A program made the translations under genes and the position numbers. Of a stretch of 64,000 bases of DNA, positions 9,270 through 61,075 are shown piece by piece. Within the stretch, counting starts at the first letter, position 1. Each line of letters starts with the position of its first letter. The DNA comes from Heteronotia binoei (taxonomy: Eukaryota), in contig NC_083236.1 of NCBI RefSeq assembly GCF_032191835.1, positions 70,990,001 through 71,054,000 of the forward strand, written 5' to 3'. Under the pieces are notes generated by a model. The model was given only the letters and a program-made list of their open reading frames with translations. It ran no database searches and was not told where the DNA came from.

Positions 9270-10280
9270 TATATTTTTTTAAATGTATAAACAATGTTAT
9301 TATTCTGCAATATATTGTAACAATAATATTTGTCTATTAATTAAAACTTCATACCAATACATTACATTTTCCACCTCCCTCCCCCCCTTTTCGTGACCTC
9401 CACCTGTGCATTTTAAAAATTACTAAACAAACTAAAAGGTAATTTTCAATTTAAGAATCTTCATAAAAAACCCAAAAAACACTATAATATACCTATAATA
9501 GAATAACTTTTCCTTTTAACTATAAGTCTTATCAAACTAAGTTAAAAAGAATAAAAAAGTTAATGTTTCATTTATTAACTGTAGTCCATTCGTTATCTCT
9601 CTAGCATTCAACTGTTATCAAAATCACCAAATGTCCTTTAACTTTCCATTGTTTTTCAACATATTTTTGAAATTTTCCCCACTCAGTTTTGAATTTCTCT
9701 AAATCATGTTGTTTTAAGATTCTTGTAAGCTTGTCCATTTCACTTCAGTGCATAACTTTAATAATCCAGTCCCACTTTTCTGGTATTTTATCTTGCTTCC
9801 ACATCTCTGCATATAATGTACTTGCAGCTGAAAGCATGTACCAAATTGTCGTTCTATCTTGTTTCGGAAATTTTTCCATTTGTAATCCCAACAAAAAGAG
9901 TTCTGGTGCCTTCTTAATGTTATATCCCAAAATATTTGAAATCTCTTACTGAATCACTTGCCAAAATTGTTTTGCCATTTCACAAGTCCACCACATATAG
10001 TAGAAAGATCCTTCATGTTTTTTTACATTTCCAACACCTATCCGACACTTGATTGTTCATTTTTGACAGTTTCTTAGGTGTCATATACCACTTGTAAAGC
10101 ATTTTAAAACAGTTTTCTTTTATATTATTACATGTTGATATCTTCATAGAGTTCTTCCATAAGTACTCCCATTGTTCCATCTGTATTTCTTTATTTATAT
10201 TGATTGCCCATTTTACCATTTGAGATTTTACTACTTCATCTTCTGTAAAATCTCAAATGATAAAATGGGCGATCAACATG
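9270..10280 (-). mobile_element. 5'-truncated L1-type LINE (ORF2 C-terminus) with short terminal inversion
   Basis: AT-rich; minus ORFs KWAININKEI...CWKCKK and GYNIKKAPELFLLG...KWDWI match the plus-strand L1 at 30600-31250. Confidence 0.85.
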
Positions 10281-10819
10281 GATTTTGGTCCCTCTAGCCA
10301 AGGGCACGGAGACCATGGAGACTGTCTGGTCCTTGTTGTCGTCCTACCTGGCTTCTGGGCTTCCCTCCTTGTCCTCAAGTGTTTCTAATAAGCCCTGCTT
10401 GGATGCTGTGGCTCTGAGCCAGAAGCAGCCAGCTCTAGAGGTCATCCTTATCTGCAGAGGTTGGGTCCCTTCCTGCTTCCACTGTGCCCTGCTCCATGTT
10501 ATTTAAAAATGAGCTGCTCATGTAGCTAAAAGTACAGTTTGGAGAACGAACACAGTTTAAATTGAGCGGCCCCTTTGAGGCCAAGAAAGTTTTATTCAAG
10601 GTATAAACTTCTGTGTGCAAGCACCCTTCTTCCAGTTCCTTAGGTTTCAAGCATGGTTATTTCAAAGCATTAGAGAAAAGGTTTTGCTTTTCTTCCAAAG
10701 ATGCTTTTGGAACGTTCTTCTGTATGCGTTTAGTTGACAAGCACCTTCAATTGTTTCCAGGAAACATATTAGCATCACTGTGTTATAGGATTATTGTAAA
10801 AAAGAAGATACCTTCTTAG

Positions 10820-11120
10820 ACAATGAGTGGAATTCTGTGCCAGAGGAAATAGCGATGGCCACAGGAATAACCAGCTGTAAAAGGGATTAGACAGATGCTT
10901 GAAGGAGTGGTCTGTCAGTAGCTACTGGTGACTGAAGGGAACTTCCCTGTCCAGAGGCAGTAAACCTCTGAATCCCAGAGCCAAGAGGCAACATCAGGGG
11001 AAGACCTTGGCCTCTGTCCTTCTTCATTTGGCCCTCCAGGGCAACTGGTTGGCTGCTGTGTGAGACCGGATGTTGCACTACGTGGCTCATGGGTCTGACT
11101 CAGCCGGGGTCTTCTGATGT
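10820..11120 (+). mobile_element. Old CR1 3' fragment
   Basis: tgccagaggaaatagcgatggcc...aaaagggattagacag...ggtctgactcagc...cttctgatgtt. Confidence 0.55.
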
Positions 11121-11489
11121 TAATTAGCTCATTCCCCCAAGACCAGGCTGCAGGGATGCTGCTGCACGGGGTGCCAGTTTACGTTCCCCAGGACAGCCCC
11201 CCTAGAGAGGATTACAGTTGTCTGGTCCAGAAGTAACTGAAGTCTGGACTAGTGAGGCCAGATCAGCAGAATCCAGAAGGTGAGAGGGCTTTTGATCCGG
11301 AGGTGGTAGAAGGCACCCTTGCATTCTTTCTGCAGTGGAGTTGTCGGCAGCGTGTGCCAGGTCCCGGAAAAGGCCTTGGCGTGGATAGTTGGAGAAAGAG
11401 TCCTTAGATCCCCCTAAGGGTACCAGCTTTGGCGAGTAGGAGCTCTCAGCCCTGCCTTCTGCTGACCGCTCTCTTGGTGGGCCTTGCAG

Positions 11490-11687
11490 TTGGAGGACCA
11501 CATTGTGCGTCTGCGGGAGGAGCTGGACCGTGAGCGGGAGGAGCGCAACTACTTCCAGCTGGAGCGGGACAAGATCCACACCTTCTGGGAGATCACTCGA
11601 CGGCAGCTCGATGAGAAGAAGGCGGAGTTGCGCAACAAGGACCGGGAGATGGAGGAGGCCGAGGAGCGGCACCAAGTGGAGATCAAG
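11490..11687 (+). CDS. GAS8: GAS8 exon 3 ([28 protein letters not shown]...VEIK)
   Basis: 198 nt; ends at a non-canonical GC donor (AAG|gcaaga). Confidence 0.95.
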
Positions 11688-11807
11688 GCAAGATGCGGGG
11701 GGGGGGGGGGGGGGGAGGGAGGGGGCCTGATTCTGTGCTCTCTCTGCCTCTGCCCCGAGGAGGGGGCCTGCCTGGTTGTAGACGGTCGGCTGTTCCTCTC
11801 CCCCCAG

Positions 11808-12014
11808 GTTTACAAGCAGAAAGTGAAGCATCTGCTGTACGAGCACCAGAACAACCTGACTGAGTTGAAGGCCGAGGGCACGGTGGCCATGAAGCTGGCC
11901 CAGAAGGACCACCGGTCCCAGGAGATGGAGCTGCGCAAGGACATGCGCACCCTGAAGGTGGAGCTGAAGGAGCAGGAGCTCGCCAATGAGATGGTGGTCA
12001 AGAATCTGCGGCTG
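11808..12014 (+). CDS. GAS8: GAS8 exon 4 ([13 protein letters not shown]...KNLRL)
   Basis: 207 nt, AG/GT flanks. Confidence 0.97.
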
Positions 12015-12125
12015 GTACGTCTCAGGGGAGTCCGGCCCCTCTGGCGGCACCCGGGCCTCAGCCCTGGAAGAAGAGCCCTGCCCGTTGGCAAGGTCTGCCC
12101 CTGATGAGCCTCTTCTCCCTGGCAG

Positions 12126-12180
12126 AAACAACAAGAGGACATGACTGCTCTCCGCTCTGACTTTGAGAGACAAGTGAAAG
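12126..12180 (+). CDS. GAS8: GAS8 exon 5 (KQQEDMTALRSDFERQVK)
   Basis: 55 nt, AG/GT flanks, phase 1 end. Confidence 0.95.
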
Positions 12181-12218
12181 GTCAGTTCTGGGGTTTGCCG
12201 TCCATGTTCAATGAGGAG

Positions 12219-12495
12219 AGCCAGTGCTGCAGTGGTTAAGTGTGTGAACTCTTATTTTGGAGATCCAGGTTTGATTCCCCACTCCTCCACTTGCACCTGC
12301 TGGAATGGCCTTGGGTCAGTCATAGATATCACAGGAGTTGTCCTTGAAAGAGCAGCTTTTGGGAGAGCTCTGTCAGCCCCACCCACATCACAGGGTGTCT
12401 GTTGTGGGGGGGAGGAGATATAGGAGATTGTAAGCCGCTCTGAGTCTCTGATTCAGAGAGAAGGGCGGGGTATAAATCTGCAGTCATCGTCGTCA
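12219..12495 (+). mobile_element. tRNA-derived SINE with L2-like tail (family B)
   Basis: gccagt(t/g)..gtggttaagtgtg...gggtttgattcccc...gggcggggtataaat. Other copies at about 15494-15770, 20099-20378, 21141-21392, 34525-34770 and 63131-63615 (two) on plus, and 25340-25710 and 50650-50932 on minus. Confidence 0.85.
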
Positions 12496-13169
12496 AGGTG
12501 CTCTGAGGCCCTCTTGGCCACAGGCCGAGTAGCTTTGGAGCTGCTTCCCCACAGTTTAGCCCCTCTCCTCCATTTTGGGGAAGGGTGGGTATTTGTAACG
12601 AATAACCACGTTTGTAGCGAGTAACCAAGTGCCCGTAACCACATCTGTCCATTGCTGAAGGGGGTGTGTGTCTGTAGTTGCTGTCCTTTGATTGATAGCT
12701 TGGCTCTTTTGGTTTGCCATAGATTGTCAGTCTGGCTAGGGCCCTTCTTCAGTGGCACTCTGTGTCCTGTGTGCCTTGCAGTTCTCCAAAAGAATGGCCA
12801 AGGCATTACTCTTAAGTGCCAAAGATGTAAGCAAAGACTATTCCAAGATACTGGCAAGTTAAACTCCCTCTAGTAGTGGTGAATGCAGTAGGCACAAAAG
12901 CACTGCTTCTTTAAACACAGCGGGGGTCTTGTAGGATGCCCAGCTCCGCCAACCCTTCTCCCTTCCCTCAGACAGTTGTGTGCTTGTGCCGGGAGTGTCT
13001 TTGCACGCATCTGAGGCTTTCCTGTCAGCCCACCCCTCTCTGTGGGGCTAGGAGGCACCCTGCCCCACCTCCTCTTCCCCCACAGCCCCCTGGTAGAGAC
13101 AGGCATAGCCTCGGCCGCAGCCTTGCCAGCTGAGCCCTCAGTCAGGCCAGCCTGGCACTGCTCCTCCAG

Positions 13170-13375
13170 AGATCGAGGCCAAGTACGAGAAGAAGATGCG
13201 GGTGCTGCGCGATGAGCTCGACCTACGCAGGAAGACGGAGATCCACGAGATCGAGGAGAGGAAGAATGGGCAGATCAACACCCTGATGAAGAATCACGAG
13301 AAGGCCTTCAGCGACATCAAGAACTACTACAACGATGTCACCCTCAACAACCTGGCGCTCATCAACACCCTCAAG
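13170..13375 (+). CDS. GAS8: GAS8 exon 6 ([26 protein letters not shown]...NTLK)
   Basis: 206 nt, AG/GT flanks. Confidence 0.97.
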
Positions 13376-13671
13376 GTAAAGCATGCCCTCCCTGACCCCG
13401 CTACGGGCAAGTCTGGTCTGGCTGCTGGTCCTTTGGGACAGTCCTCCCCCGAGCCTCCCAGGTCCCGAGGGAAGGCCTTTTCCCTGCAGCCAGACTGCCA
13501 AGACTGGGATGCTGCCGTGTGTCATGAGTTCCATTGGGCTCTGGGGGAGAGACCTTTGCCCCGGGGAGTCTCAGCCTGGGTTGGAGGGAACTCAGCTGGG
13601 GTGGGTGTGAGGGGCTGGCCTCTAGGACCAGGGACATGCCTTGCCCTCTGTGTGTCTGCCCGGGAGTGCAG

Positions 13672-13839
13672 GAGCAGATGGAGGAGATGAAGAAGAAGGA
13701 GGACCACCTGGAGAAGGAGATGGCCGAGGTGCTGCTACAGAACAAGCGGCTGACAGAGCCGCTGCAGCGGGCCCGAGAAGAGGTGGCCGAGCTGCAGAAG
13801 AAGCTGGCCCACTACGAGAAGGACAAGATCTCTCTGGTG
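13672..13839 (+). CDS. GAS8: GAS8 exon 7 ([15 protein letters not shown]...DKISLV)
   Basis: 168 nt, gtgagt donor. Confidence 0.96.
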
Positions 13840-14577
13840 GTGAGTCCCGGGGCTCTGCAGTGCACTTCCCCACTTGCACTCTGCTGTACTCAGTAGTGCC
13901 CTCTGTGGGTGAGACTGGGGAAAACATTGGGCTAAGATACACTGAGCTTTGCCTGAGCTGGAGGCCACACCATGTAACCACTAACCGCTTGTATTGAACG
14001 TCCTGTCCTGTTCCGGTGGAGAGGCATTTCACTTTTGGGGCTTTTGGACAGACACGTTTGTACTGTGTCAAAGACAGCTAATCTCTGCTGTTGCCTGATA
14101 TCTCTTTTGTTGTTACTTACTTCATTTATACAACACTTTTTGTCAACATGGGAATCCAGAGTGGTTCAGAATATTCTCCTTTTCTCTGTTTTATTCTTGT
14201 AGCGATGCTTGACAAGGTCTTAGCCTGTGTTACCTGTTTGTTGGTCCTCCAGAGCAGCTGGCTGGCCACTGTGTGAAACAGATGTTGGCCTGGAGGAACC
14301 ACAGCTGCTTCCTGTGTCATGTTGTTCTGCTGAGATGTGCCACAGTTTTTGTCATGTTTGGAAAAAACCCAACAAAGTCCACCCCAGAACTCATAGAGCT
14401 GGTCTTTGCAGCTTGAGGTAGTTGAGTAACACCTGAGGACAAGTGGAGAGAAACTCTCCTCCAGATGCCTTCCCTTCCCCACTGCCTTGTGCTTCTCTTT
14501 CTCTTTTTTGCTGCTTGGTTTAGAGTAGAACAAACACCTCCCGACTTCTGTATTAACCTTTTCCTTTCCTCCCCCAG

Positions 14578-14664: not shown

Positions 14665-16380
14665 GTGAGACCTATTGGGGACTCCTGCTGTGTGTCTGAT
14701 TTGTGTCTTGCTGGGCAGGCGGGTGGGACAGAAGCGGTGGGCATGCTGGGCTGCTGTGCCAAGGGGAAGACCCAGGCCTGCTTCCTGAGCCCTCTGCCCC
14801 TCCCCCCTGCCCCCTGGCAGTGCTGGAACCCCAGGCGTTTCGTGCTGAGAACTGTGGCATTTCCCTTCATCTCCTGCTTTCGCTCTCTGTGTCCCTGGCT
14901 TTCCACAGGGAGGACCCACAATAAAGGTGGCGCCAAGTGTGTGGCTTGGTGCCTTCCGGGGGGTGGGATGTTGTCTTTTAGAATTCCCGGGAAAGCTTGG
15001 CCGGGCAACGACATGTCTTCCTCTGTTCAGTCTCCAGCAGCAGCTGCCCAAAGAGAGCAAGGGTGCCTGGGAGGGAGAGGGAGAGGGAAGGACTCTCCTG
15101 TTCTCCACTCAGCAGCCCGGCCTCCTGTGTTGTATGCAGGGGTTGCAGCTCAGTTCCTAGCAGGCCGGGGGACTTTCTCCCGCATGGGGCTCATCTGCAG
15201 TTGCGCAGTGATCGGGGACCTCGTTAGCAACTCGCCATTAAGATAACCAGCGGGTTGTAATGAGGGTGCCCTTGTGAGAAATGGGTCAGATTGCCCCTCC
15301 CCCGCAATGCTGCTTTGTCCCTGAATGCTGTTCTCTTGCTGGGTGCCCGTTGCCCCCTCCATTGTCTGATCGTAGAAATGTTTTCACCTAGCTTTTCTAC
15401 TACTCTGTAAATTCAAAGTAGCTCACAATTTGGAGCCAGTAACAAAAGTCGATAAGCGAGTCCCGGTCTTACTTCGCCGTCTTCAACGTTCCCCAGTTTG
15501 GTGTAGTGGTGAAGTGTGCGGACTCTTATCTGGGAGAACCGGGTTTGATTCCCCACTCCTCCACTTGCAGCTGCTGGAATGGCCTTGGGTCAGCCAGAGC
15601 TCTGGCAGAGTTGTCCTTGAAAGGGCAGCTTTTGTCAGAGCTCTCTCAGCCCCACCCACCTCACAGGGTGTCTCTTGTGGGGGGCGGGGAAGGTAAAGGA
15701 GATGGTGACCGCTCTGAGACTCTGATATTCAGAGTATAGGGTGGGATATAAATCCAATATCTTCTTCTTTCCTCTCCTTACTGGGCTTCAGCTGAGGACA
15801 AGGCATTGCTGGCCCCTATGGGAATATCCAGCAGATGTGGGGGGAGGTGTCTTTGCTGATGGATCCAGAAGCGTGAGGCCTGTGTTGGCTCCGTTCCTTT
15901 GCCGAACACCGCTTCCTTGGAGAAGATGCTCAGGAGAGGCAGGGGCCCAGAGCCTGCCAGGGAGCCTCCCTCCTGCCCTCCCCGTGGAAGAGACCCCCTC
16001 TGCAGCTGCCCTTCCTTTGGCCTCTGTGGCAAGCCCTTTTCATTTGGTGGAGGGGAAGGGAAGAGTTTGGCAGGAAAGGTTTTAACCTGTTTGCTCACTC
16101 TTCAAAATTGGCTTTCATTGGTGCTTTCATTCACCTGCCCAAAGCAGGGCTTTTTTTGTGAAAAAGCCCAGCAGGAACTCCTTTGCATGTTAGGCCACAC
16201 CCCCTGCTGCCAAGCCAGCCGGAACTGTGTTCCTGTGCATTCCTGCTTAGAAAAAGCCCCGGGCCAAAGTATTTGATGTGTGCGAGCAAAAGCGTATTGG
16301 CCAGCATCGGGGCTCTGGGACAAGACCTGTTGTGGAGCTCTTCTGAAGCGTGCGGCTGGTTGGGTGTCTCCCCGCTGCAG

Positions 16381-16590
16381 GTTCAGGCTGAGCGAGACGA
16401 GCTTTACCAGAAGTTCACCAAAGCCATTAACGAGGTGCAGCAGAAAACGGGCTTCAAGAACCTGCTGCTGGAGCGGAAGCTGCAGGGCCTCTCCAACATC
16501 CTGGAGAAGAAGGAGGTGCAGCTGAACGAGGTGCTGGCGGCCTCCAACCTGGACCCCAGCGCTCTGACCGTGGTCACCCGGAAGCTGGAG
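16381..16590 (+). CDS. GAS8: GAS8 exon 9 ([22 protein letters not shown]...TRKLE)
   Basis: 210 nt, AG/GT flanks. Confidence 0.97.
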
Positions 16591-18123
16591 GTACTGCCTG
16601 CCCCCTTGGGGAAAAACTGTTGGGGTGCGGAGGGGCGGCTTTGGGTGGGGTCCGTGGACAGCCTGACAGGTGCAGTCGCAGCGCGTCAGCTCAACCTTCT
16701 GGCAAAGGAAGTGGGGAGGGTGTCTCTTACATTGTATTTTGGGGAGCTGTGGACAGAAGTCGCTTGGGGAGGAAGCGGGAGGAGCAAGACTGGACTCGCA
16801 CACCAGGCCGGCACCAGCTTCTGCATGCTCAGGGCAGGCCTCTTAAGCCTCTCGTCCTTTGAGCTCCCGCTGGAGCACGGTTGTAGTCCAGAGGCATGAG
16901 GTTGTGTTCAGCATCCCACTGAAGGGCTGGAGAGAGGCACGGGGAGAGAGGACAGCGGGAGGAGTGGCAGAGTTTCCCAGAGTGGGCTTTTTGCTCGTGA
17001 CCAGACGGAGCGAGATCCAGGAGCAGATTTCCACAGCAAATGGCAGCTCCAGGGCTGCAATGTCGGGGAGGGAGGAGTTGCCCCCCCTCCCCCTTTCAAG
17101 CTTGCGGAGGGAGGCAGGGATACTGCTGAACTGTCCCTCTCCCTTTGTGAGCTAAACAGTGGCCTGAGCCTGATGTTGGGAAAATGACATGAGGGAGGAA
17201 GGGTTCAGTCCCTTTCCCCTGCATTGTGGCCCCGATACACAGGGCGTACACCCGCCTCGTACCATTCCCTCGCATTGAAAGCCATGCAGAAGATCCAGCA
17301 GCTCTTTGCATTCTTTGTGTGGTGTGAACGTCCCTCACGGGATGTGGACTGTGCAGCATCTTGGCCTTCTGGCTAGGCTGCAGGGTGGGGGGCTGAGGAG
17401 GAGGGAGCCTTCCGAGTGCCTTTCCCTTCCCTCGGATTTGTACCATCTTCAGAAATATAGTGCTGGGTTGTTCAGGGGTCTTTAGCAGGAATCACACACG
17501 GCCTCCCCCCCTGCATGCCAGCGAGGCATGAGTGGGCCAAGTGCCGTCCCTGCTGTGGGCTCCAGGGTGGGGCTGCCCAGCTGGAAGGAGGGAGAGCCTC
17601 ACGCTGCCCTGATCAGGCTGACACCTTCTGGGGCTCTCAGTCTTCTAGATGCCCTCAGGACTCAGCCCAGCTTCATCTCGCCCTCTTCCACTCTATTGGG
17701 ATCCAACAGTCACCAGCTGCCCCTGCTCTCTCTTTTTTTGGCCACTCAGCCTCTTGGGACGTCTCAGGCCCAGAAGGGCTACTCACCCTTTCAGAATGCT
17801 CCTCTTGCCGCTTTGCCGGAGAGCTGGCTCAGTAGAATATCCCCCCCTCCCCACACACACCCCCATCGCACTGCCAGCCCTCAGATCCAAGGGCCAGGGA
17901 ATGCCGGGGACACCCCAGACTCCTTTCCAGGGCAGCCTCTGCAGAGGAGACGTCTGCCTGGGGAAGGGACTGAGCAGCGTCCACATTCCAGGCTCTGGCA
18001 GGCGCCAGTAATTGGAGAAGCATCTCCGCAGATTTCCTTCCCGTGGCTTGGTGCCTCCTTGCACCAGCTGCTTCCCCCACCCCCCAAAAAGCGCTGCACT
18101 CAACTGCTATTTGTACAGCAGGC

Positions 18124-18550
18124 ATATGAACATATGAAGCTGCCTTCTACTGAATCAGACCCCCCTCGGTCCATCAAAGTCAGTCTTGTCTACTCAGACT
18201 GGCAGCGGCTCTCCAGGGTCTCAAGCTGAGGTTTTTCACGCCTACTTGCCTGGACCCTTTTTAGTTGGAGATGCCAGGGATTGAACTTGGGACCTCCTGC
18301 TTACCAAGCAGATGCTCTACCACTGAGCCACCATTTCTTTCCTAATATGAACATATGAAGTTGCCTTATACTGAATCAGACCCCCTTGGTCTATCAAAGT
18401 CAGTCTTGTCTACTCAGACTGGCAGCGGCTCTCCAGGGTCTCAAGCTGAGGTATTCCACGCCTACTTGCCTGGACCCTTTTGAGTTGAACATGCTGGGGA
18501 TTGAACCTGGGACCTTCTGCTTCCCAAGCAGATGCTCCACCACTGAGCCA
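18124..18550 (-). mobile_element. Two tandem family A SINEs in GAS8 intron 9
   Basis: Same unit as 7985-8825. Confidence 0.88.
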
Positions 18551-19131
18551 TATATCCAGAGGCACTTTCCAGCATGGTACTCCATCCAGGTATCGGGTCC
18601 CGCACCAAGATATTGCAATGTTGGCAGCTCTGGGTTGCAGATTTCCGCTCCCTCTGTCCGAGCGGGGGAGAGGTTATGGGATGAGCCCTGGCCACTTGCA
18701 ACACATTGAGGGGTCTTGGGTTCTTGGGAACAGAGAGAGCCAGGGCAGCCTGCAGAATCTCCTTTTGGTGCATTTTGTTCCCTTGTGATCATGCTGTGTG
18801 AGTTGGGGATTGGGCAGCTTGTATGCAGAGTGGAATCCTGAAGCAGCTCTGCTTTCCAGTCACGAGGAAATGAGAGCTGCAGACAGAGCCGTGGCAGTGG
18901 GGGGTGGGTGCTGCTAAGGACGCTCCCTCTCAGAGGCCTGAGGAAGACCAGTCGGGAATTGCAGTCTGTCTGGAGGTGGGCCATATTTAGGGTGCAGGAT
19001 TTGCAGAGGGGAAAGATGCCGTTGCAGGGCTGTGGCAGAGAAGGTAGCCAGCTTTGCCTATCGCACACCAGCCAGTTGCCCTGTGCCGCGTCATGTCTTA
19101 ATGTGCTTCTGGTGGTCTTCTTCCTCCCCAG

Positions 19132-19197
19132 GACGTCCTGGATTCCAAGAACAGTGCCATCAAGGACCTGCAGTATGAGCTGGCCCGAGTGTGCAAG
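19132..19197 (+). CDS. GAS8: GAS8 exon 10 ([22 protein letters not shown])
   Basis: 66 nt, AG/GT flanks. Confidence 0.96.
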
Positions 19198-20758
19198 GTG
19201 AGGGAGGGGCTCACGGAGAGACCTGCATCAGGGTCTTGGGAGAGGCAGGGAAAGGGACCCTTTAGATCCAGACGCTTGGCCTTGGGTCCTTTGCTAAAGA
19301 GCCTCTGGAACAGTCGGAAGAAGCACTTCCTTTTAATTTTGCTAAAGCTTTGGGTCACAACCGATCCCGGTGGCTGGCCAAGATGAGAGGCCTCCTCTCC
19401 TTTTTCGGCTGTTAATAATTTGAGAGCGAAGTTTCTCCCTTTCCTTCCCTGGGCCGCTTAGAAACTTACCTCCCTGAATTCCGTCCGCCCTTTGGTTCAT
19501 TTTTTTTAAACCTAGTCAGCCTTTGCTGGTCTTGGCATTTCCTCCAAACGTAGTCCGGGTCATCTCATTTGCCCTTTTCCTTCTCTTTGGAGACATTTTG
19601 GGAATGGGAAGTCATCATTACACAGGCTAGCCTGGAGAGTCCTCTGCGCGTAGAGGCATCATGAACACAGACACATGCAGAGGAAGACCTGTACAACCTT
19701 GCGTGAGAGAGGAAGCCCCGTCTCTCCCCCTCTCCCCACTGGCCCCTTTTCCTCCCTGCTTCTTTTCCCTGGAGCCAACAGGGCCAGTCACTGGAGGGGG
19801 CTGCAGTCGAAAGTGCAGACTGCTTGTAGAGGAGCCAGCTGATGGAGGCAGGGGAGGCGTAGGCAAGACTGCCAGGCAGGCCTTTTGCTCCAAGCCCAGG
19901 CACACCCACACCCACACCCCAGCCTACAGTAGCTGGGGGAAGGAGGCGGAGTGGAAAGGCCACCCTCTGCTCTAAGCTTCTCTCACAGGCCCCTGCTTCA
20001 TCTGGCTGCCAGCAGCATCTCCTCCTCCCATCTTCAGCGGAGCCAGTTTATAATAATAATAATAAATTTTTAATTTATATCCCACCCTTCCCACCAAAGC
20101 AGTTTGGTGTAGTGGTTAAGTGTGTGGACTTTTAGCTGGGAGAACCGGGTTTGATTCCCCACTCCTCCACTTGCACCTGCTGGAATGGCCTTGGGTCAGC
20201 CATAGCTATCACAGGAGTTGTCCTTGAAAGGGCAGCTGCTGTAAGAGCTCTCTCAGCCCCACCTACCTCACAGAGTGTCTGTTGTGGGGGAGGAAGGGAA
20301 AGGAGATTTTAGGCTACTCTGAGACTGTGATTCAGAGAGAAAGGCAGGGGCTAAATCAGCAGTCTTCTTCTTCTTCTTGCTGCGACCCCTCGTAGAGCTT
20401 CCACAGCCATCCCCTCCCCATCCTGCCACTTATAATGTTGACTGTGGTCTCACTCGATATTTTTTAGCTGCAGGGCCTACACAAGCAGAGATGTCGCTTC
20501 TCCAGTTTGTTTCTAATTAACTTTTGGGTTCATCTGCAAACCCGTGGGTTCCCGCAGGTTTATAAAAGGGGAAACCACCCCCCCATCAGTATCTAGTCCC
20601 CTTGTGTGGATTCTTTGATCTGCATTCTGAAGTGATCCAGAGCAGAATGAGGCAAAAGGAAATCTACACGTAGCAGATGATGGTTGCTGACGTTGTTCTT
20701 TGCCTCAGTGCTTCCCTCAACTGCAGCCTCCTGTTCTCTCCCCCACCCCCTCTTGCAG

Positions 20759-21580: not shown

Positions 21581-21670
21581 CTAGTTCCCCCGGTAAGTGG
21601 TGTAGGAGTAGGGGCTGAACAGCAGGGGGATGTGGACCTTCCGTTCTGCTTCTGTCACTGTGAAGACGAC
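21581..21670 (-). CDS. URAH: 5-hydroxyisourate hydrolase, last exon (VVFTVTEAERKVHIPLLFSPYSYTTYRGN-stop)
   Basis: tttcag acceptor; HIPLLxSPYSYTTYRG signature of the HIUase/transthyretin-related family. Confidence 0.93.
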   Translation of the reverse strand, partial: VVFTVTEAERKVHIPLLFSPYSYTTYRGN

Positions 21671-22279: not shown

Positions 22280-22422
22280 TTTTTACTCATCCGGGCCCAC
22301 GGCCCATGAGGATCCTCCAGCTGGGCGAGGTGCACGGCCAGGCCGCTTGCAGGGAGGCCAGTGAGGACGTTCAGCGCGTGGACCGTCAGCGCAGGGTGGG
22401 GAGCCCCATCCGGGCCAGCAGC
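22280..22422 (-). CDS. URAH: URAH exon 2 (AAGPDGAPHPALTVHALNVLTGLPASGLAVHL...WARMSK); start codon unresolved
   Basis: cttcccag acceptor, gtaggt donor, phase 2 end matching the next exon; LTxHxLNxxxGxPA motif with catalytic His. The ATG at 22409 is out of frame by one base. Confidence 0.85.
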
Positions 22423-23030: not shown

Positions 23031-23415
23031 CCTGGCTCTAGTCCAGAACTTTGGAGATGCGTGCTAGCACCAGTGGCTTTTGAGAGGGGATTGGCAGCAA
23101 AGGCTGCCCAACCTAGAAGGATTTTGGCTTCATGATGGAAGGCAGGGTGGAGGGCTGTGAGCAGCCTGCCCAGCTGCCTGCCGTTAGTTCTTCTCTGGCG
23201 GAGTTCTCTGCCTGGCGCAGGCCTGGCACATGGAGGGTGGGGCTGTCCCTGCTGCTGGCTTCCATCCCACCCACCCCCCTGCCTCCAGTCTCACATGGTC
23301 CAGGGGTTGCACTCCATCCCTTTGCTGGTTTCCCTGCTCCATTTCTCTTGGGACTAGGAGGGTGTTCCTGATCCCGCCCCCCTTGGCATCATTTCCTGAG
23401 AGTGCAAGGGCAGCA

Positions 23416-23426
23416 GTGACTCAGCA
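23416..23426. promoter_or_regulatory. ARE/MARE consensus GTGACTCAGCA upstream of URAH
   Basis: Exact RTGACnnnGC match with an AP-1 core, next to a GTTAAT HNF1-type half-site; function untested. Confidence 0.3.
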
Positions 23427-23507
23427 CAGAGCATTAACCCTGTAGCTGCTGCAGAGGTGCCTGCCTGCTGGAAATGGGGAGAGGGGGCAACATCTTCTGG
23501 TGGGCCA

Positions 23508-23950
23508 TAAGAACATAAGAGAAGCCATGCTGGATCAGGCCAACGGCCCATCAAGTCCAACACTCTGTGTCACACAGTGGCAAAAATTTTTATATACACA
23601 CATACACTGTGGCTAATAGCCACTGATGGACCTGTGCTCCATATTTTTATCTAAACCCCTCTTGAAGGTGGCTATGCTTGTGGCCGCCACCACCTCCTGT
23701 GGCAGTGAATTCCACATGTTAATCACCCTTTGGGTGAAGAAGTACTTCCTTTTATCCGTTTTAACCTTTCTGCTCAGCAATTTCATCGAATGCCCACGAG
23801 TTCTTGTATTGTGAGAAAGGGAGAAAAGTACCTCTTTCTCTACTTTCTCCATCCCATGCATTATCTTGTAAACCTCTATCATGTCACCCCGCAGTCGACG
23901 TTTCTCCAAGCTAAAGAGCCCCAAGCCTTTTAACCGTTCTTCATAGGGAA
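23508..23950 (-). mobile_element. CR1 LINE 3' fragment
   Basis: Minus ORF YEERLKGLGLFSLEKRRLRGDMIEVYKI...; (cataagaa)n tail. Confidence 0.9.
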
Positions 23951-24774
23951 AAGGCCAGCCATTTCCCCCTGAAAGAAATGCAGCATGCATACCTCCCCCC
24001 ACCCCCAGCACTGGAAGAGGTGGGAAATATTCTGGGGGTGGAGAGTATCAGTGGGGAACTGAGGCCACATCATAAGAGTGGGGTTGGGGTGAGAAGGAAG
24101 AGGTTGAACGGGGCAGGGGGCATTTGCATGATGGGCTCCTTAAGAGAAGCCTGCTGCTCAAACTTTCCCACGTTGCGGGAAGGTCGAGTGAGGGAGGCAT
24201 GTTTGCACAGTGGGCTCCTCAAGAGGAGCCCGTTGTGCAAACAGGGCCTGCAATTTGGGCAGGTGCTCGTGGCCCTCCCCCACTGGGGGGCCAGAGGTGG
24301 GGCCTTGCCGGGGGCAGCAAAAGCCCCAGCGCTGGCCCTGCCAGTGGCGTCATCATGACTGAGAAAACGGCACGCTGGCATTATTGTTGCGGCTGCTGCT
24401 GTTAATCACCCTATCCCAGCTTGTGCAGGGCTCTGGGTGATGTACAACAAAAGGCATAGAGCCATAAAACAAATGTACAAAACATGAAGATTCCTTCAGC
24501 TTTCGTTGCCTTGTTGATCATGGGGTGGGGGGGTTGCCCCAAGGACTCCTGTGGGGTTGGTGTAGCTTTGTGTCCAAAGTGTTCATCATGGTCTAGAGGC
24601 CAGCCAGGCTGGAGTCCCAAATTCTCCAGCTGCACCACCAGTGAGCTTTGATTTCCATGGGCCAGTCCTCAAGGAGTGCGGGGGGAGCTCCGGGTCTCTT
24701 CCTGGCACAGCCCACCCTTCTGCCTGGCCTGGACCTGCAAAGAGAAGAGTGGGGCTTGCCCTGCCTGCCTGTAC

Positions 24775-24918
24775 CTGCACCAGTGGCTTGGGGAAGGGGC
24801 CCTTCTCATTCTCTGGGCAATTGATGGGGGGAATGGCCCAGTCCCTCTTCTGCCTCCTCAGCCCAGTGCCGGACTCTGGGGAGGCCGCTGCTTCTGCCCC
24901 CAGGGATGGGAAGGAGAC
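24775..24918 (-). other. Isolated E-cadherin-type exon 4 ([48 protein letters not shown]); gene remnant or exon of an unannotated transcript
   Basis: ctctttcccttgcag acceptor, 144 nt open frame, gtacag donor, phase 0-0. RRQKR furin site and DWxIPPI EC1 start. No partner cadherin exons found on this strand. Confidence 0.9.
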
Positions 24919-25059
24919 CTGCAAGGGAAAGAGGTTAGGAGGCCTTTTGTGACCCAGCCCCAGGGATCCTTTGGGCCCCGATCTCTTCTTGCACGTTTTC
25001 AGATTGTAACGGAGGAGGAGAAGGAGATTGCATTTATACCCTGCCCTTTGCTCAGAACA

Positions 25060-25335: not shown

Positions 25336-25709
25336 TATGCTCAGAGCAGCATACAATCACCTTTCCCTTCCCCTCCCCACCACAGACACCCTGTGAAGTA
25401 GGTGGGACTTATTTATTTATTACTTTAAATTTCTATTCTGCCCTCTCTGCAAGCGGACTCAGGGCGGCTAACAATCAATTCAAGCATCTATAATTATATA
25501 CAATTTAAAACCAATAAATACAGTTAAAATATTTTATGGTGCTGTACATATGGCTAAGAGAACTCTGACAGAACTGCTCTTGAGAGAACAGCTCTGAGAG
25601 AACTGGGATGAGCCCAAGGTCACCCAGGGGCTGCACATGGAGGAGGCAGTGGGGAATCAAACCTGGCTCTCCCAGGTGAGAGTCTGCCTCTGCTATCCAC
25701 TACACCAAA

Positions 25710-26570
25710 CGGGCTCTCTTTGCTGACCCTTGCTGACTCAGCTAAAAGCCTCGGGATCGTCCTGATTCCAGCTTTATTATTGGAGAAGAAACTTAAAACA
25801 GTTGCAGAAAAGGTCTTCTTTCCACTCAGCCCAGCCTGTAAGATGACCCTTGACCTGGATACAGCTGATCTGGCCACCTGGATTCACGCAACAGTAACCT
25901 CGAGACTAGACTACTGCAATGCACTCTACCTGGGTCTCCCCACAAAATCAGCTTGGAAACTCCAGCTGGCCCAGAATGCTGCAGCTCAGCTGTTAACAGG
26001 AGCTACATGGAACATCCTACAGATGTTCCATTGGGTGATCATCTGTTACTGGGCTCAGGTTTAAGTTGTTATCATATATAAAAAGAGCACAGAGTGGGAA
26101 AGCTGCAGTACTGCAGTCGGAGCCTTCTGCTCACGACCTGAGTTTGATCCCGTCGGAAGCTGGGTTCAGGTACCTGGCTCAGGGTTGACTCAGCCTTCCA
26201 TCCTTCTGAGGTCGGTCAAATGAGTCCCCAGCTTGCTGGGGGGAAAGCGTAGATGACTGGGGAAGGCAATAGCAAACCACCCCATTAAAAGTCTGTTGTG
26301 AAAGCAACGTCACTCCAGAGTTGGAAATGACTGGTGCTTGTACAGGGAACTACCTTTACCTTTTATCATATATAAAGCCTTTCACAGCCTTGCCCCCCCC
26401 CCCTTTTTGTGGGATTGCCTCCTGCTGTGTTCCACTGTGACAACATTGCTCAAGTTAGCAGGGGCTCTTGCAGCTGCCAACCTGCCAGTGGGCAAAATCA
26501 CCATAGCCCCTCTGCGTGTTTTCTCTGCTGGGGCTCCCAGCTTGCAGAACGGCCTGCCAAAGCAGCTCAG
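25710..26570 (+). mobile_element. L2-type LINE 3' fragment, interrupted by a Sauria SINE and a solo LTR
   Basis: ORF LATWIHATVTSRLDYCNALYLGLP...LQLAQNAAAQLLTG. Confidence 0.75.
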
Positions 26571-33289: not shown

Positions 33290-33772
33290 TAAGCAACCCA
33301 AGCGAAATCACGGACAAGCAGAGTGCAGAAGACCATGGGTTCCGTGATATGCCAGCCTCCAAAATATACAAAAGCTCCACAAACTCCATGGATTCAGTAA
33401 TAAACCAAATTATTTCAGAAAAATTCAAAGCATAATCTTAGAAACTACATATATCCAAATCATAAACCACATAGAACAAGAGATGGGACAAAACTCATTT
33501 GAAATGCAAATATCAAAGTCTCTCAAAAGAACTCAGTACAACGTATCCGTGTGCAGCTATACATGTGGAATCTTTAATACAACAGCTTACTTAGTACGAC
33601 TTAGTACTAAGTCATTCCGGTTTCAGTGACGCTTCTTCCAGCTACAGACTGCTGCACCAGAGACTGTGAGGGGCCTTGAAGCTTTCTTGCCACGTTCTGA
33701 AATTTGAAGATTAAGGGAGTGACCCGAAGCCCCCTTCCTGTGTGGATTTCTCTTCCATCCCACTGAATATAA
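33290..33772 (-). mobile_element. Possible Penelope-type pLTR fragment inside a MITE
   Basis: AT-rich block with degenerate CTGGAAGAAG...GAAAC on minus; interrupts ...acaggggatt|ggcaa. Confidence 0.35.
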
Positions 33773-33825
33773 TTGGCAAGACTCAAGGAGCGGGCGGCAC
33801 TAAGAAACAACTGGGGGGATGTCAT

Positions 33826-34500
33826 GAGCCAGTTTGGTGTAATGGTTAAATGCACGGACTCTTACCTGGGAGAACCGGATTTGATTCCCCACTCCTCCAC
33901 TTGCACCTGCTGGAATGGCCTTGGGTCAGCCAGAGCTCTCTTATCTGGGAGAACCGGGTCTGATTCCCCACTCCTCCACTTGCAGCTGCTGGAATGGCCT
34001 TGGGTCAGCCAGAGCTCTCTTATCTGGGAGAACCAGGTGTGATTCCCCACTCCTCCACTTGCAGCTGCTGGAATGGTCTTGGGTCAGCCAGAGCTCTCTT
34101 ATCTGGGAGAACCGGGTTTGATTCCCCACTCCTCCACTTGCAGCTGCTGGAATGGTCTTGGGTCAGCCAGAGCTCTCTTATCTGGGAGAACCAGGTGTGA
34201 TTCCCCACTCCTCCACTTGCAGCTGCTGGAATGGCCTTGGGTCAGCCAGAGCTCTCTTATCTGGGAGAACCGGGTTGGATTCTCCACTCCTCCACTTGCA
34301 GCTGCTGGAATGGCCTTGGGTCAGCAGAGCTCTCTTATCTGGGAGAACTGGGTTTGATTCCCCACTCCTCCACTTGCAGCTGCTGGAATGGTCTTGGGTC
34401 AGCCAGAGCTCTCTTATCTGGGAGAACCAGGTGTGATTCCCCACTCCTCCACTTGCACCTCCTGAAATGGCCTTGGGTCAGCCATAACCCTCACATTGTC
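33826..34500 (+). repeat. Family B SINE with about 8 tandem copies of an internal 79-bp unit
   Basis: ctcttatctgggagaacc...ggtcagccagagct recurs every 79 nt. Confidence 0.93.
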
Positions 34501-36374
34501 CTTGAAAGGGCAGCTTCTGTGAGAGCCAGTTTGGTATAGTGGTTAAGTGTGCGGACTCTTATCTGGGAGAACCGGGTTTGATTCCCCGCTCCTCCACTTG
34601 CACCTCCTGGAATGGCCTTGGGTCAACCATAGCTCTCATAGGAGTTGTCCTTGAAAGGGCAGCTACTGTAAGAGCTCTCTCAGCCCCACCCACCTCACAG
34701 GGTGTCTGTTGCGGGGGGAGGTAAAGGAGATTGTGACCACTCTGAGATTCAAAGTATAGGGCAGGATATAAATCCAAATCCAATGACGTTTCTGGTTTGG
34801 CACCATGGCAGAGGACACTGTTCCAACAACCCCAACCACACTGACATCACTGATCCATGTACCACCACCCCCTCCTTTGCTGAAAGGTTCCCCAGACACC
34901 GAGCCTTTCTTGGGGGACAGGGGAAGATCCTACCTGAGTGACCAGACAGGAGAGCAGGAGGCTGGCTCCACAGAGAGTCCTCATCCTGGCCTGGATTTCA
35001 ACCCTCTGTGCCCTTCTGGCCAAGGGCGGGTAGCCCAGAGAGCCCTGCTGGCTGCCAGAGCAAAGTTTGTCTTATAGACCCATGTGGGGGAGGGCCCTGT
35101 TTCGACAGCCCTTGGAAGCCGGCCAGCAAGGGCGGGGCGGGCTGTTGCACCACCAGCTCTGTGGGCATGATCACCAGGGCCCTCTTTCTCAAGGCTTCAG
35201 CTGCTATTTCTGCAGGGCAGAGCTTCACCTGAGCGTGACAACTCACCAGAATCAGGCATGGGCTCCAGGCCAGGTGTTCTTTAACACGGAAAGATGGACA
35301 TTTCCTGCAGCAAGGTGGAAGCTGGTTCGCCTCTCGCCGCTGCTCTCGTCCCACGGCAAGAGCTACCGTGGCAGACATTGCCTGGCAGTGCCCGCTTCCC
35401 ATGGCTTTGGGAAGGAAGGTGGGCAGGGCTTTTTTTGTAGCAGGAACTCCTTTGCATATTAGGCCACACCTTCCTGATGTAGCCAATCCTCCGAGAGCTT
35501 ACAGGGCCTACTGTAAGACTGGCTACATCAGGGAAGTGTGGCCTAATATGCAAAGGAGTTCCTGTTACAAGAAAAGCACTGAAGGTGGGCCTCAGCATCT
35601 CTCTGGGGTGAAGCTCCCCAGTGGAAAGGGCTCTGAGGGTGGCTTCCTCATGGTTCAGCTGTGGGACTGGCCTGTGGAGGCCCCCCAATCCCAAGGGTGC
35701 GCCCATCTGTAGGGAGTCCAGATGACTGGCACCAATGATGGTGGGGCCATGCCTTCTCTCCATCTTTTTGCCTGCCTCGTTTTTCTCTAAGGAGTGCAGG
35801 GTAACATACAGCACTCTTCTTTCTTTGGTTTCTACTGGGGTTTGTCCAGTTATGAGTGTCCCCTTGACTCTCTTGTGGGCCACACAGATGCCTTTTGGTG
35901 CACGCAGGTCCCAGGTCCGGTCTTGGGCTTCTGACTATCAAAAGGTCTCTTTCTTCTTTCTTTGCCTGGGAGAACTGCTGTCTACTGCAGCCAGCAGCAC
36001 TGAGCTCAAAAGGACAAGGGTCTGATGCGGCAGGAGGTGGCCACAGACGTCCTCGAGAAAAACCTACAGCTGTGCTCTTCTGCTTTTCGCTTGGACCCTG
36101 GGAGGGGACTTCCCACTGCCCATTTGAAGATTGCAACAGTTATTGGCCGGCTCAGACATATCCCACTTCCTCAGGTATGGAAAGAAATCCAACTGAGAAC
36201 CTGATTTACTGGGGAAGGGATGCAATCATGGAGCTGGAAGGGACCTCCGAGGTGATCTAGTCCAACCCCTTGCATGATGCAGGAAACTCACAAGTACCTC
36301 CCCCTGCCCTCCTTCTCATGACCTGCCTCAGTTCACAGAATCAGCATTGCTGTCAAATGGCCCTCCAGCCAGAC

Positions 36375-47500: not shown

Positions 47501-49921
47501 GCTGATTCACTGGGAGCCTGCAGAAAGGGCCTCTTAATGGCATGCAGTTTCTGAGTAGGGCGGGGGTGAAGGTCTGGCAGCAAGTGTTTGGGGGGTCCTC
47601 TCTGGGGGCTTTTGGGCCAGGTGGAAGCAGGAGGGGCCACAGCTCCATGTCTTGGCTGGACTTTCTCCAGGTGGGAAGGAATAAGCCACCTTATGATCTT
47701 GTAATACTTGCTCTTGGGGGGGGGGGTAGAAGTTGCTCAGAGAAGTTGCTGGAACTAACGTGGCTGGTGGCCCAGTTTTTAAAAAATTGGTGCGTGCATA
47801 TGTGTATACCTGGAAGTCATGCCTGACTTCTGGCGGCCGCTAGTGGGGCTTGGACATTTCAGAAAGGTGGGTTGCTATTGCCTGCCTCTGCCTCCCGGCC
47901 TTGGTATTCCTTGGAGGTTTCCCCTTCGAGTACTTGCCAGAGTCAGCCCTGCTTCGCTTCTGAGGTCTGACAAGATTGGGTGTGGCTGAGCTTATTATCC
48001 AGGCTGGGGCAGCCCTGTCTTTCACAGAGTCCTGCACTTGAATCGCCAGCTTCCTTCAAGATCCTGGTTGTGTCTCTTATAGCCTGGGGGGGCCTCTTGG
48101 ATTCCTGAAAGGTCCCCTTCTGTTCCCCCCCAACACGGGATCATCTGGAATGGCTGTATGCAGAGACAACATGCAGCGGATGGTGGGACCACTGTTCTGG
48201 GGGGGGTGGTAGCATCATGAAATCTGCTTCCTCCCCCACTTGCTACATTCCTCTCTAATCTGAGGTTGGTGAAAACAACTCTTGAGGGGGGGGGTGTTGT
48301 GTGAAACAGCAAATGAGCAGAGCTTCTGGTTCGTGCTGCTCCTTGTACCGATGCAGGCGTCTTTTGGCTTTGTGGGTTGGCTCCTGTGAGTGCAGACACT
48401 GCATCCTTCTAAATGACCTTTTAAAAACAATGGTGATCCCCCCCCCCACCGTGTGGGTTGAGTGGGGTCCCAAAAGCAGGTTCCTGAAGGAAGGCAGAGC
48501 ATGAAGGCAGGAAGGGCTGCACCAGGGCTTAGTTCGTGTGGCTCCTTCTTCCACTCCTGGGGAAATGTTGGTTGCCACTTTGGGGTCTGGAGGCAGTTTC
48601 TCTCCAGGCCAGGCATCCTGGAGGGTTTTTGCCGTCTTCTGGGTGTGGAGCCCGCAGGGGTCACTGGGGGTGTCTGTGTGTTTTCTGAATGTCCTGCCTG
48701 CCTTGTGCAGGGGGTTGAACTAGATGACCCTGGGGGTCCCTTCCAACTCTAGGATTCTAAGAGTGAAGCAGACGAGGCGGGGCTGGCTTGGATGGGCTGC
48801 AAGCACGAGCCCCCGAAGATTGTCAGCTCTGTGTCTGTTGTGTTTGGGACTTTTGTGCCTGCCTCAGATTGGCCAGAGACATGCAGCTGGATGCTCCTTT
48901 TCTTCATGTTGTGTGAGGTGTGTCTGTCTTTGCTTCCTTTCGTAAGTCAGGCAGCTGCTGTCCTCAACCTGCCTGTGCCTGGAATATGTTTCCTTCATTT
49001 GTTCCCTCCTTTTCTCCCCACTGGGCCCCTAGAGCACTTTCTGTTCTCCATTTTGGCCTCCCCACAGCCTGTGAGGTAGGCTGGCTGAGGGGGGGGGGCA
49101 GTTCCAAGGTCACCCAGCAAGCTTCCATGGCGGACTGATGACTCGAACTCAGGCCTCCCAGATCTTAGTATTGCATTAACTGCTGAGCCATGCTTGGTCT
49201 CTGTTGGCTGCTTGTTCTCCACTGTCTGTTGTGGGGTGGGCAGCTTCCATGCATTCAACAAGGTCAGGACAGGGAGGGAGGGAGGAGCATGTGCAGTTGG
49301 TTCTGGCTTTGGAAAAAGAGAAGACTTTCAGCAGCAGAACCCCCAGAGTGGGGGGGGGGAGGAAGCCCCCCAGCTTGGACTGAGTAGGGCCTGGCCTGCC
49401 CCCCCTCCAGAGGAGCAAAGCTGCCTGAGGCCGGGTTCCCCTCCCCGCTGGGCGAGCAGTTCAAGGGCTCCCTTACTGATGACCTGCTGACCCCCCCCCC
49501 AGCCTGGAAAGGGCAAACAAAGCCCTCCCCCTGCCAGATGCGATCTGCCTTCCCAGGGTGGGCGAGGGCTGCAAAGGCTTCCCCCGAGGATCCCTTATCA
49601 GAGGCGCATTCCAATCTCCCTTCTCCAACCTCCGGCCCCTCAATTAGGGGACTTGTTCACACTTGAGCTGAGGTGGGTCGGAGGATGGCTTGTCTAGATA
49701 ACAACTGCGGAGGCTCAGGAGGGCTCCGATGAAATGGACTTTGAGCTGCAGCCAGCCTCTGGCAAAACCAAGCACTGTCTAGTTAAGGTGTGGGGGGGGG
49801 AAACAACACGACTCCCTCCTTGGGGATCAGACGTAAGTGGTTGTTTGGAGCTGTTCCCCGCCAGGCTTGGATCCGGGCCTTGCGTTAATGAGGGCCCCTG
49901 CTCTTCCTCCCCTCCCCCCAG

Positions 49922-50133
49922 TTCAGTTTGAAGACTGCACGGGATGGAAGCTGGCACGCTACAGCACCGAGGACGCCAACTTCAGGGTGCTGGCGGATGG
50001 CACAGTCCTGGTGAGGCACCGCACGCAGCTGCGTGGAGAGGCGAGGACTTTCGTGGTGCAGGCCTGGGATTCCACCGGCACCAAATCCTCAGCCGTGGTG
50101 ACCGTGCGGAACAAAGGCCGTCATTCTCCACAG
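49922..50133 (+). CDS. CDH3: CDH3 exon 3, prodomain (QFEDCTG...FVVQAWDS...HSPQ)
   Basis: 212 nt, phases 1 to 0; FEDC, DG and AWD prodomain motifs. Confidence 0.92.
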
Positions 50134-51964: not shown

Positions 51965-52111
51965 GAGGAGTCTGGTCCTGCCAACCAAGTGGAGGTGCAA
52001 AGGTTTCCAGGGCCCAGGTCTGGCCTGAAGCGGCAGAAGAGGGATTGGGTGATTCCACCCATCAAAGTCCCTGAAAACGAGAGGGGCCCCTTCCCCAAGA
52101 AGCTGGTCCAG
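51965..52111 (+). CDS. CDH3: CDH3 exon 4 (...GLKRQKR|[23 protein letters not shown])
   Basis: 147 nt; furin site; [15 protein letters not shown] matches recalled chicken B-cadherin better than E-cadherin. Confidence 0.93.
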
Positions 52112-60868: not shown

Positions 60869-61075
60869 NNNNNNNNNNNNNNNNNNNNNNNNNNNNNNNN
60901 NNNNNNNNNNNNNNNNNNNNNNNNNNNNNNNNNNNNNNNNNNNNNNNNNNNNNNNNNNNNNNNNNNNNNNNNNNNNNNNNNNNNNNNNNNNNNNNNNNNN
61001 NNNNNNNNNNNNNNNNNNNNNNNNNNNNNNNNNNNNNNNNNNNNNNNNNNNNNNNNNNNNNNNNNNNNNNNNNNN
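60869..61075. other. Assembly gap (207 N) in CDH3 intron 10
   Basis: Run of N. Confidence 1.

Follow-up and report, generated by a model that had tools for sequence, protein, structure and literature searches.

An E-cadherin-like exon upstream of URAH in Heteronotia binoei as a probable truncated and gene-converted variant of an ancient cadherin-HIUase fusion

Transthyretin (TTR) is a secreted descendant of HIUase whose signal peptide is encoded by a separate first exon, and HIUase itself is recognized by a His in LT.H.L, an Arg in (D/S)GR, a His in H(V/I)PLL and a C-terminal YRGS. A putative second form of HIUase was reportedly described in coelacanths by Forconi et al. 2014. That paper is cited as ref. 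38 in PMC4324301. A literature search for cadherin together with HIUase or URAH returned nothing relevant, papers on reptile uricolysis and on HIUase evolution being silent on cadherin, and in this literature the fusion isoform was found described nowhere beyond the database name of a coelacanth protein, P0147 of Latimeria menadoensis, deposited as "5-hydroxyisourate hydrolase B".

With the H. binoei protein discussed below as query, we retrieved dozens of proteins of 346–391 aa, each possessing both PF00028 and PF00576, that are named "cadherin-1-like", "B-cadherin-like" or "hydroxyisourate hydrolase" and come from geckos, lacertids, snakes, anguids, amphisbaenians, turtles and many birds. 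At least 30 sauropsid proteins combine a signal, an exon-4-like segment, two copies of PF00028 and PF00576, and in the aligned sauropsid fusions the order is signal peptide, exon-4-like segment (RRQKR, DWVIPP), EC1, EC2 and HIUase. A second search, limited to long proteins with an HIUase domain, added turtles, birds, carnivores (fox, 646 aa, meerkat and wolverine), a newt, frogs and Latimeria. The non-sauropsid fusions are P0140 (Vulpes), P0136 (Suricata), P0138 (Gulo), P0141 (Lissotriton), P0145 (Rhinoderma) and P0146/P0147 (Latimeria); in P0147, P0145, P0141 and P0140 a cadherin N-terminal module is followed by a C-terminal HIUase ending in YRGS. The coelacanth and amphibian fusions retain the cadherin prodomain (PF08758), whereas the fox form, which has more than two EC repeats, the sauropsid forms and H. 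binoei lack it, and H. binoei lacks the EC repeats as well. Given its presence in amphibians, coelacanth, carnivores and sauropsids, the architecture is at least as old as the sarcopterygians and has been conserved. Moreover, EC1-EC2 of leopard gecko (Eublepharis) and painted turtle compare with a dN/dS of 0.25 over 193 codons, which places the cadherin module of the fusion under purifying selection where it is present.

The H. binoei sequence analysed here, "the window", is a stretch of 64,000 nucleotides (C14:70990001-71054000) from a genome of 2.63 Gb. It contains GAS8-like coding sequence at 11.4–12.1 kb on the plus strand, URAH at 21.6–22.4 kb and a cadherin-type exon at 24.8 kb, both on the minus strand, and CDH3 on the plus strand from about 50 kb. 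The same order is observed in Eublepharis, where the fusion gene lies between a divergent CDH3 and a convergent GAS8, and the turtle fusion gene is likewise followed by GAS8. The GAS8 coiled-coil coding sequence occupies positions 11466–12101 of the window (+), and PF13851 is found in the syntenic Eublepharis and turtle loci. The order GAS8-URAH-CDH3-CDH1 seen here differs from that in human, in which GAS8 and the URAH pseudogene are at a distance from CDH3 and CDH1 on chromosome 16. At the Gekko japonicus locus (L022), which contains 5.7 kb of N and has no exon 2, two adjoining called genes (10001–14512 and 23070–24512) both have Cadherin and Transthyretin domains, and the fusion gene may have been tandemly duplicated there. 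The CDH3 gene of the window is interrupted by 207 N (60869–61075).

The exon at 24775–24918 (−) is the homolog of cadherin exon 4 and, as we show below, exon 2 of the cadherin-HIUase gene (the URAH "B-form"). It had been described in an earlier note as a stop-free, phase 0-0 exon of 144 nt with acceptor, GT donor, RRQKR and DWAIPP, and translation confirmed this description: there are no stops, and the end of a propeptide is followed by the RRQKR furin site and DWAIPP...PLVQ, the exon-4 module of the type in which a furin site R-x-K-R precedes DW...PENE (RRQKR|...). The acceptor is pyrimidine-rich (ctctttcccttgcag|G) and the donor reads CAG|gtacag. When the 2.63-Gb genome was searched in all six frames, the exon was found once at 100% identity. 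The runner-up was a CDH1-like exon 4 (C14:71098809-928, + strand, 78% aa, E 5.7e-15), and a further match was CDH3 exon 4 (window 51977–52111, + strand, 60% aa, E 1.3e-10). On these matches the cadherin resemblance of the exon is to be regarded as far beyond chance. The similarity to CDH3 exon 4 given previously, about 72/90 nt and 24/30 aa, also holds, and we count 17 differences from CDH3 exon 4 within the last 87 nt.

The exon had been called an orphan, a view that does not survive inspection of the gene structure. The earlier note overlooked a signal-peptide-like exon upstream (exon 1b, 34934–34984), the location of URAH on the same strand and the splice that joins the exon to URAH. A protein-database search with the exon inside its 186-codon open frame retrieved the NCBI protein P0001, "transthyretin-like [Heteronotia binoei]", 223 aa, which includes the whole 144-nt exon at 100% identity and in which exon 1a (35247–35402) is followed by the full 144-nt exon and then by three URAH exons. 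The URAH exons are on the strand of the 24775–24918 exon, 2.4 kb downstream of it. The first that is shared between isoforms (22280–22422, −; AAGPDGAPHPALTVHALN...) is in phase 0 and follows an AG acceptor at 22423-4, and its joints are seen in the RNA run X1. The second, carrying the HIUase core of PF00576 (22061–22201, −), is connected by joints 22201->22280 and 21668->22061 in runs X1 and X5, and the last coding exon (21584–21668, −) ends in ...YSYTTYRGN and a stop. There is no in-frame ATG before a stop in or upstream of the first shared URAH exon, so the start codon must come from an upstream exon. The in-frame splice into this exon, with the pattern …(A/T)(A/P)G(P/Q)(D/E)G.PHP.LTVH, is present both in P0001 and in the X1 joint, and the same junction is used in Paroedura and Gekko.

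Residues 112–222 of P0001 match positions 1–109 of the 109 of PF00576 with an E of 1.4e-32, a full-length domain, and the aligned HIUase residues His115, Arg155, His207, Tyr220 and Gly222 are conserved. A C-terminal YRGN is found in 6/6 gecko URAH sequences (P0001, P0003, P0007, P0012, P0014 and P0025; 21584–21598 in H. binoei); the C-terminus is YRGS in other squamates, turtles, birds, mammals, amphibians and coelacanth. The gecko YRGN may be associated with altered HIUase activity. With its PF00576 fold behind an N-terminal signal peptide from a separate first exon, the predicted H. binoei protein resembles TTR. It differs from TTR in keeping the catalytic His/Arg/His and YRG, in taking its leader from a cadherin paralog, and in being an isoform of URAH instead of a duplicate gene. 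The true TTR of the genome is probably represented by a weak match at C7:74106189.

Three alternative first exons precede URAH. The coding part of exon 1b (34934–34984, −), running from ATG to CAG|gtagga (MRTLCGASLLLSCLVTQ), lies 10 kb upstream of the 24775–24918 exon on the same strand and has, by its hydropathy score, the hydrophobic core typical of a signal peptide. It is the ortholog of exon 1 of the gecko fusions: exon 1 and the promoter of Eublepharis are orthologous to the exon 1b region by tblastn and blastn, and the first exon of Paroedura (MRTLFGTSLLVVFLAPQ) is, from its sequence, plainly an ortholog of exon 1b. A TATAAG at 35071–35076, about 90 nt upstream of exon 1b, is a candidate promoter element. 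Exon 1a (35247–35402, −; donor ctg|gtgagt), which provides the first 52 aa of P0001, is not signal-peptide-like and comes solely from the NCBI model. Exon 1c (23295–23342, −; MEQGNQQRDGVQPLDH), with its ATG at 23342, a GTGAGA donor and phase 0, begins the ordinary stand-alone URAH isoform; its region is 85% identical to Eublepharis L021:19180-19370, ATG and donor included, and the N-terminus of the URAH of Euleptes (P0012) resembles it. Exon 1c is preceded by a conserved element (window 23400–23460, minus strand, aligned with L021:19180-19250) that reads GGGTTAA...GCTGAGT.ACTGCTGCC...TCAGGAAATGATGCCAA and resembles a promoter module of the liver type (HNF1 or C/EBP-like). A motif search found no PTS2-type first exon of URAH.

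Splicing of the exon to URAH is observed in RNA. Run X1 consists of Logan RNA contigs from an animal related to the reference, about 3% different in intron sequence. The joint 22422->24862 has a depth of 677 in X1 contigs, and the depth in the 24800–24999 bin is 429, compared with 17 in each adjoining bin and only 12 at exon 1c. The upstream B-form is thus the dominant URAH mRNA in X1. One X1 contig that ends at the exon-2 acceptor continues for 28 further letters that map uniquely to 34937–34964, within exon 1b; in this contig, as in the sauropsid proteins, the signal-peptide exon 1 is spliced directly to the exon-4-like exon with no prodomain exons. Only the 5′ 57 nt of exon 2 (24862–24918, −) appear in the abundant X1 contigs, joined to URAH at 22422. 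Exon 1b, these 57 nt and URAH form an open reading frame of 158 aa from the ATG to the URAH stop, and with the full 144 nt the frame is likewise open and is 187 aa long. In the raw reads of runs X5–X7 the expression of URAH is very low (depth about 2), and partial reads of 30–45 nt on 24775–24813 may be cross-mapped CDH1 mRNA. Most of the RNA read depth of the region is held by arrays of an about 79-nt unit and SINE-like elements at 33770–34480 (both strands), 25340–25720 and 26090–26360, which are found many times over in the introns of CDH3 and CDH1.

As read in the reference sequence, the donor of the X1 junction would be a non-canonical GGG|CTGAGG. However, the junction contig and an unspliced contig both stop exactly at 24890, and with 31-letter words this means that the last base common to spliced and unspliced RNA is 24861, not 24862. 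The X1 animal would therefore carry a G at this position, giving GGG|GTGAGG, a good donor. Every cadherin and fusion exon that we compared has CTG (Leu) at this site, so the G would be derived in the X1 lineage. The reference animal would have to splice from the old donor at 24774, as the NCBI model does.

The H. binoei locus agrees with the fusions of Eublepharis macularius (P0007), Paroedura picta (P0003/P0020) and Chrysemys picta (P0016) in position, in exon 1 (MRTL... in Paroedura), in exon 2, in the URAH acceptor and in the HIUase domain. It differs from them in lacking four EC1-EC2 exons, about 195 residues, and in having CDH1 sequence in the 3′ part of exon 2. The orthology is observed by blastn as a collinear series of blocks between H. 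binoei and the Eublepharis locus L021: the promoter and exon 1 (35327–34863 and 9709–10135), exon 2 with both flanks (24933–24734 and 14333–14534), the conserved block with exon 1c (23457–23276 and 19182–19366) and the URAH exons. The exon orthologous to 24775–24918, flanks included, is L021:14348-14491. In this syntenic interval of another gecko, a comparison already named in the earlier note, the exon is thus present with orthologous flanks, and CDH3 and GAS8 flank the whole. Between 14534 and 19182 Eublepharis carries the four EC1-EC2 exons (16270–18739), an interval of about 4.6 kb, whereas the corresponding deletion site in H. binoei (23458–24733, −) is about 1.3 kb long, including a 450-nt LINE fragment.

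This deletion is observed as well in the independent X1 animal, a contig of which spans 23273–24890 unbroken except for the absent LINE fragment, and so it is not an assembly artefact of this genome. Since the LINE fragment (23503–23952, 450 nt, a CR1-like reverse-transcriptase tail) is absent from that contig, its insertion is lineage-specific or polymorphic. Tandem units of 66–69 nt occur at 23506–23574, and the introns of CDH1 contain long arrays of the 67-nt unit (C14:71092-71094 kb and 71103.6-71104.4 kb). The deletion removed the cadherin domains only, the conserved exon 1c block being retained.

One could ask whether exon 1b, with its signal peptide and its place on the same strand 10 kb upstream, belongs together with this exon to a complete third classical cadherin on the minus strand, the other exons of which were overlooked. 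We give this reading almost no weight. A tblastn search with eight orthologous fusion proteins gave no EC1-EC2 match in the window beyond CDH3, and a genome-wide scan with Eublepharis EC1-EC2 matched CDH1 (71–84%) and CDH3 (68–72%) only, with no third set. Among all stop-free segments of the window, blastp found no minus-strand counterpart of CDH3 or CDH1 exons 5–16. A genome scan with PF08758 found CDH3 (window 49912–50100, +), CDH1 and others, but from 24.9 to 44 kb the minus strand gave no match, and no exon for a Cadherin_pro domain, an EC repeat, a transmembrane segment or a cytoplasmic tail lies on that strand of the window. The same searches uphold the statements in the earlier note that the minus strand holds no other cadherin EC exon and that no exon 5 lies between the exon and URAH. 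Moreover, what follows 2.4 kb downstream is URAH, which is spliced to the exon. A full cadherin gene on the minus strand was rejected, no further cadherin exon being found apart from exon 1b. With the EC repeats absent from window and genome and the syntenic 4.6 kb missing, H. binoei has a truncated derivative of the fusion and is not a full member of the family.

The exon itself is observed to be a mosaic. Like CDH1 exon 4 (C14:71098785-71098928), it is 144 nt long and phase 0-0, with a furin site and a DW(V/A) strand-swap N-terminus; it differs from CDH1 exon 4 in its flanks, its first 57 nt, its context and its strand, and it is followed by URAH and not by EC1 exons. In the first 57 nt H. 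binoei differs at 14 positions from the Eublepharis ortholog, at 26 from the turtle ortholog and at 33 from its own CDH1 exon 4, whereas in the last 87 nt the corresponding numbers are 24, 14 and 7 (Fisher p = 6e-5 for the contrast between the two parts). By blastn, 24866–24772 matches C14:71098837-931 with 91.6% identity over 95 nt, and the sequences flanking this segment have no match. Both intron flanks of the exon match the Eublepharis ortholog. The CDH1 paralog is older than the turtle/squamate split, and yet it is closer to this part of the exon than the orthologs are, which argues that the sequence was copied, in a short conversion from CDH1 exon 4. The last 87 nt of the exon are probably a product of gene conversion, and the probable tract, 24772–24866 (−), takes in the furin site, DWAIPP...PLVQ, the donor GT and three intron bases. 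Of the 7 differences from CDH1 in the last 87 nt, 5 are in synonymous and 2 in non-synonymous codons. The exon has the CDH1-type ENEK in place of the ENER of every other fusion, and this gives the direction as CDH1 to exon; the 8% divergence indicates that the event was not very recent. The CDH1-like residues of the exon would be due to this conversion from its own CDH1 exon 4, which would also have renewed the GT donor.

The high similarity to CDH1, 92% over the last 95 nt, is also what might be expected if CDH1 exon 4 had been duplicated recently or the assembly were at fault, both having been raised earlier as possible meanings of near-identity to the species' own CDH1. We regard either as highly improbable: the similarity is confined to about 95 nt, with unalignable flanks and no CDH1 homology across the initial 57 nt; the Eublepharis fusion exon is the ortholog of the 5′ part, flanks included; the exon has one copy only at 100% identity in the genome; and an RNA contig of independent origin covers the 23273–24890 interval. 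The orthologous flanks already refute this rival, and both misassembly and recent duplication are excluded. Nor did the suggestion of a recent origin stand, as animals from coelacanth to birds possess the cadherin-HIUase gene.

Together, these observations lead us to an explanation that we consider well supported overall, which identifies the exon as exon 2 of a cadherin-HIUase fusion of ancient origin that has lost its EC exons, the 3′ part of exon 2 having been converted from CDH1. In most squamates, turtles and birds this gene encodes a signal peptide, an exon-4-like exon (a short pro-segment, the furin site and the start of EC1), EC1-EC2 and HIUase. The Heteronotia lineage lost the four EC exons by a deletion of about 4.6 kb, as a result of which exon 2 splices straight and in frame to the first shared URAH exon. 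The 3′ two-thirds of exon 2 would later have been overwritten by conversion from the neighbouring CDH1 exon 4, which would account for its resemblance to a pristine exon of E-cadherin. The protein made from it would probably begin with a signal peptide, continue through a short linker and end in an intact HIUase domain, with 187 aa, or 158 aa when only the first 57 nt are used; the full-exon product would contain the furin site and, from the cadherin N-terminus, a stub of 23 residues. The truncated B-form would be an HIUase sent to the secretory pathway without adhesive domains. Its gene structure, orthology, deletion, mosaic exon and splicing in RNA contigs are observed; its secretion, furin cleavage and enzymatic competence are predictions from sequence. 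Several points weigh against this explanation: the X1 junction has a non-canonical donor in the reference sequence and comes from an animal about 3% diverged in the intron, the few X5–X7 reads on 24775–24813 may belong to CDH1, the gecko proteins end in YRGN where the HIUase signature has YRGS, and the first exon of the NCBI model differs and has no signal peptide.

Two earlier proposals are reconciled in part by this explanation. The idea of a remnant of an inverted CDH1 duplicate or third paralog was half right, in that the exon does belong to a truncated third CDH1-like paralog. The idea of a captured exon in a new transcript was likewise half right: the exon is kept in the transcript of another gene, URAH, but the gene is old and the exon is already in the NCBI model. 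Selection had been suggested from the intact frame and splice sites. Both are indeed intact; gene conversion, together with the role of the exon in linking the signal-peptide exon to URAH by coding sequence, explains this at least as well. The observation in the earlier note is thereby confirmed and its interpretation partly supported.

The structure just described does not by itself imply a function. The open frame across 19 or 48 codons could be the result of chance and gene conversion, and a function of the truncated B-form is putative. Indeed, with the same structure the truncated B-form might be a non-functional leftover, exons 1b and 2 being spliced by inheritance, the exon 1c URAH being the sole functional product, and the exon being intact merely because of gene conversion and too little time for decay. 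The adhesive domains, elsewhere under purifying selection, are gone here, conservation is seen in the canonical exon 1c and the element upstream of it, and the conversion tract accounts for the good preservation of the exon. For exon 2 itself, the comparison of Eublepharis with turtle indicates weak constraint, with a dN/dS of about 0.86 over 48 codons. However, a leftover would have to be reconciled with a B-form junction of depth 677 against 12 at exon 1c in X1 and with a frame that is open from the exon 1b ATG to the URAH stop in both splice versions, and we consider a non-functional B-form possible but doubtful.

In a further reading of the exon, the whole of it is translated behind the signal peptide and the furin cut at RRQKR frees DWAIPP... 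ends on a secreted HIUase. We think this very unlikely. If it were true, a tetrameric HIUase would present four free strand-swap N-termini (Trp2) with no EC1 body, kept identical to those of E-cadherin by conversion or selection, and the enzyme could dock in the Trp2 pocket of epithelial E-cadherin or act as an adhesion decoy. In the sister lineage (X1), the peptide would then be trimmed off by splicing from a newly evolved GT donor at 24861.

Returning to the explanation by deletion and conversion, the exon is a lineage-specific, degenerate variant of an old, annotated and essentially unstudied cadherin-HIUase fusion. This removes a false lead, the exon being neither a free-floating E-cadherin exon nor a misassembly, and provides a clean, small case of gene conversion giving a relic a freshly made look. 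From coelacanth to birds, an upstream isoform of URAH places a signal peptide and an E-cadherin-like EC1-EC2 tip before a tetrameric enzyme of the urate pathway. H. binoei represents a natural deletion of the cadherin module in which leader and enzyme are kept, a useful comparison for the role of the cadherin part, and its case parallels the route by which transthyretin became a secreted descendant of HIUase.
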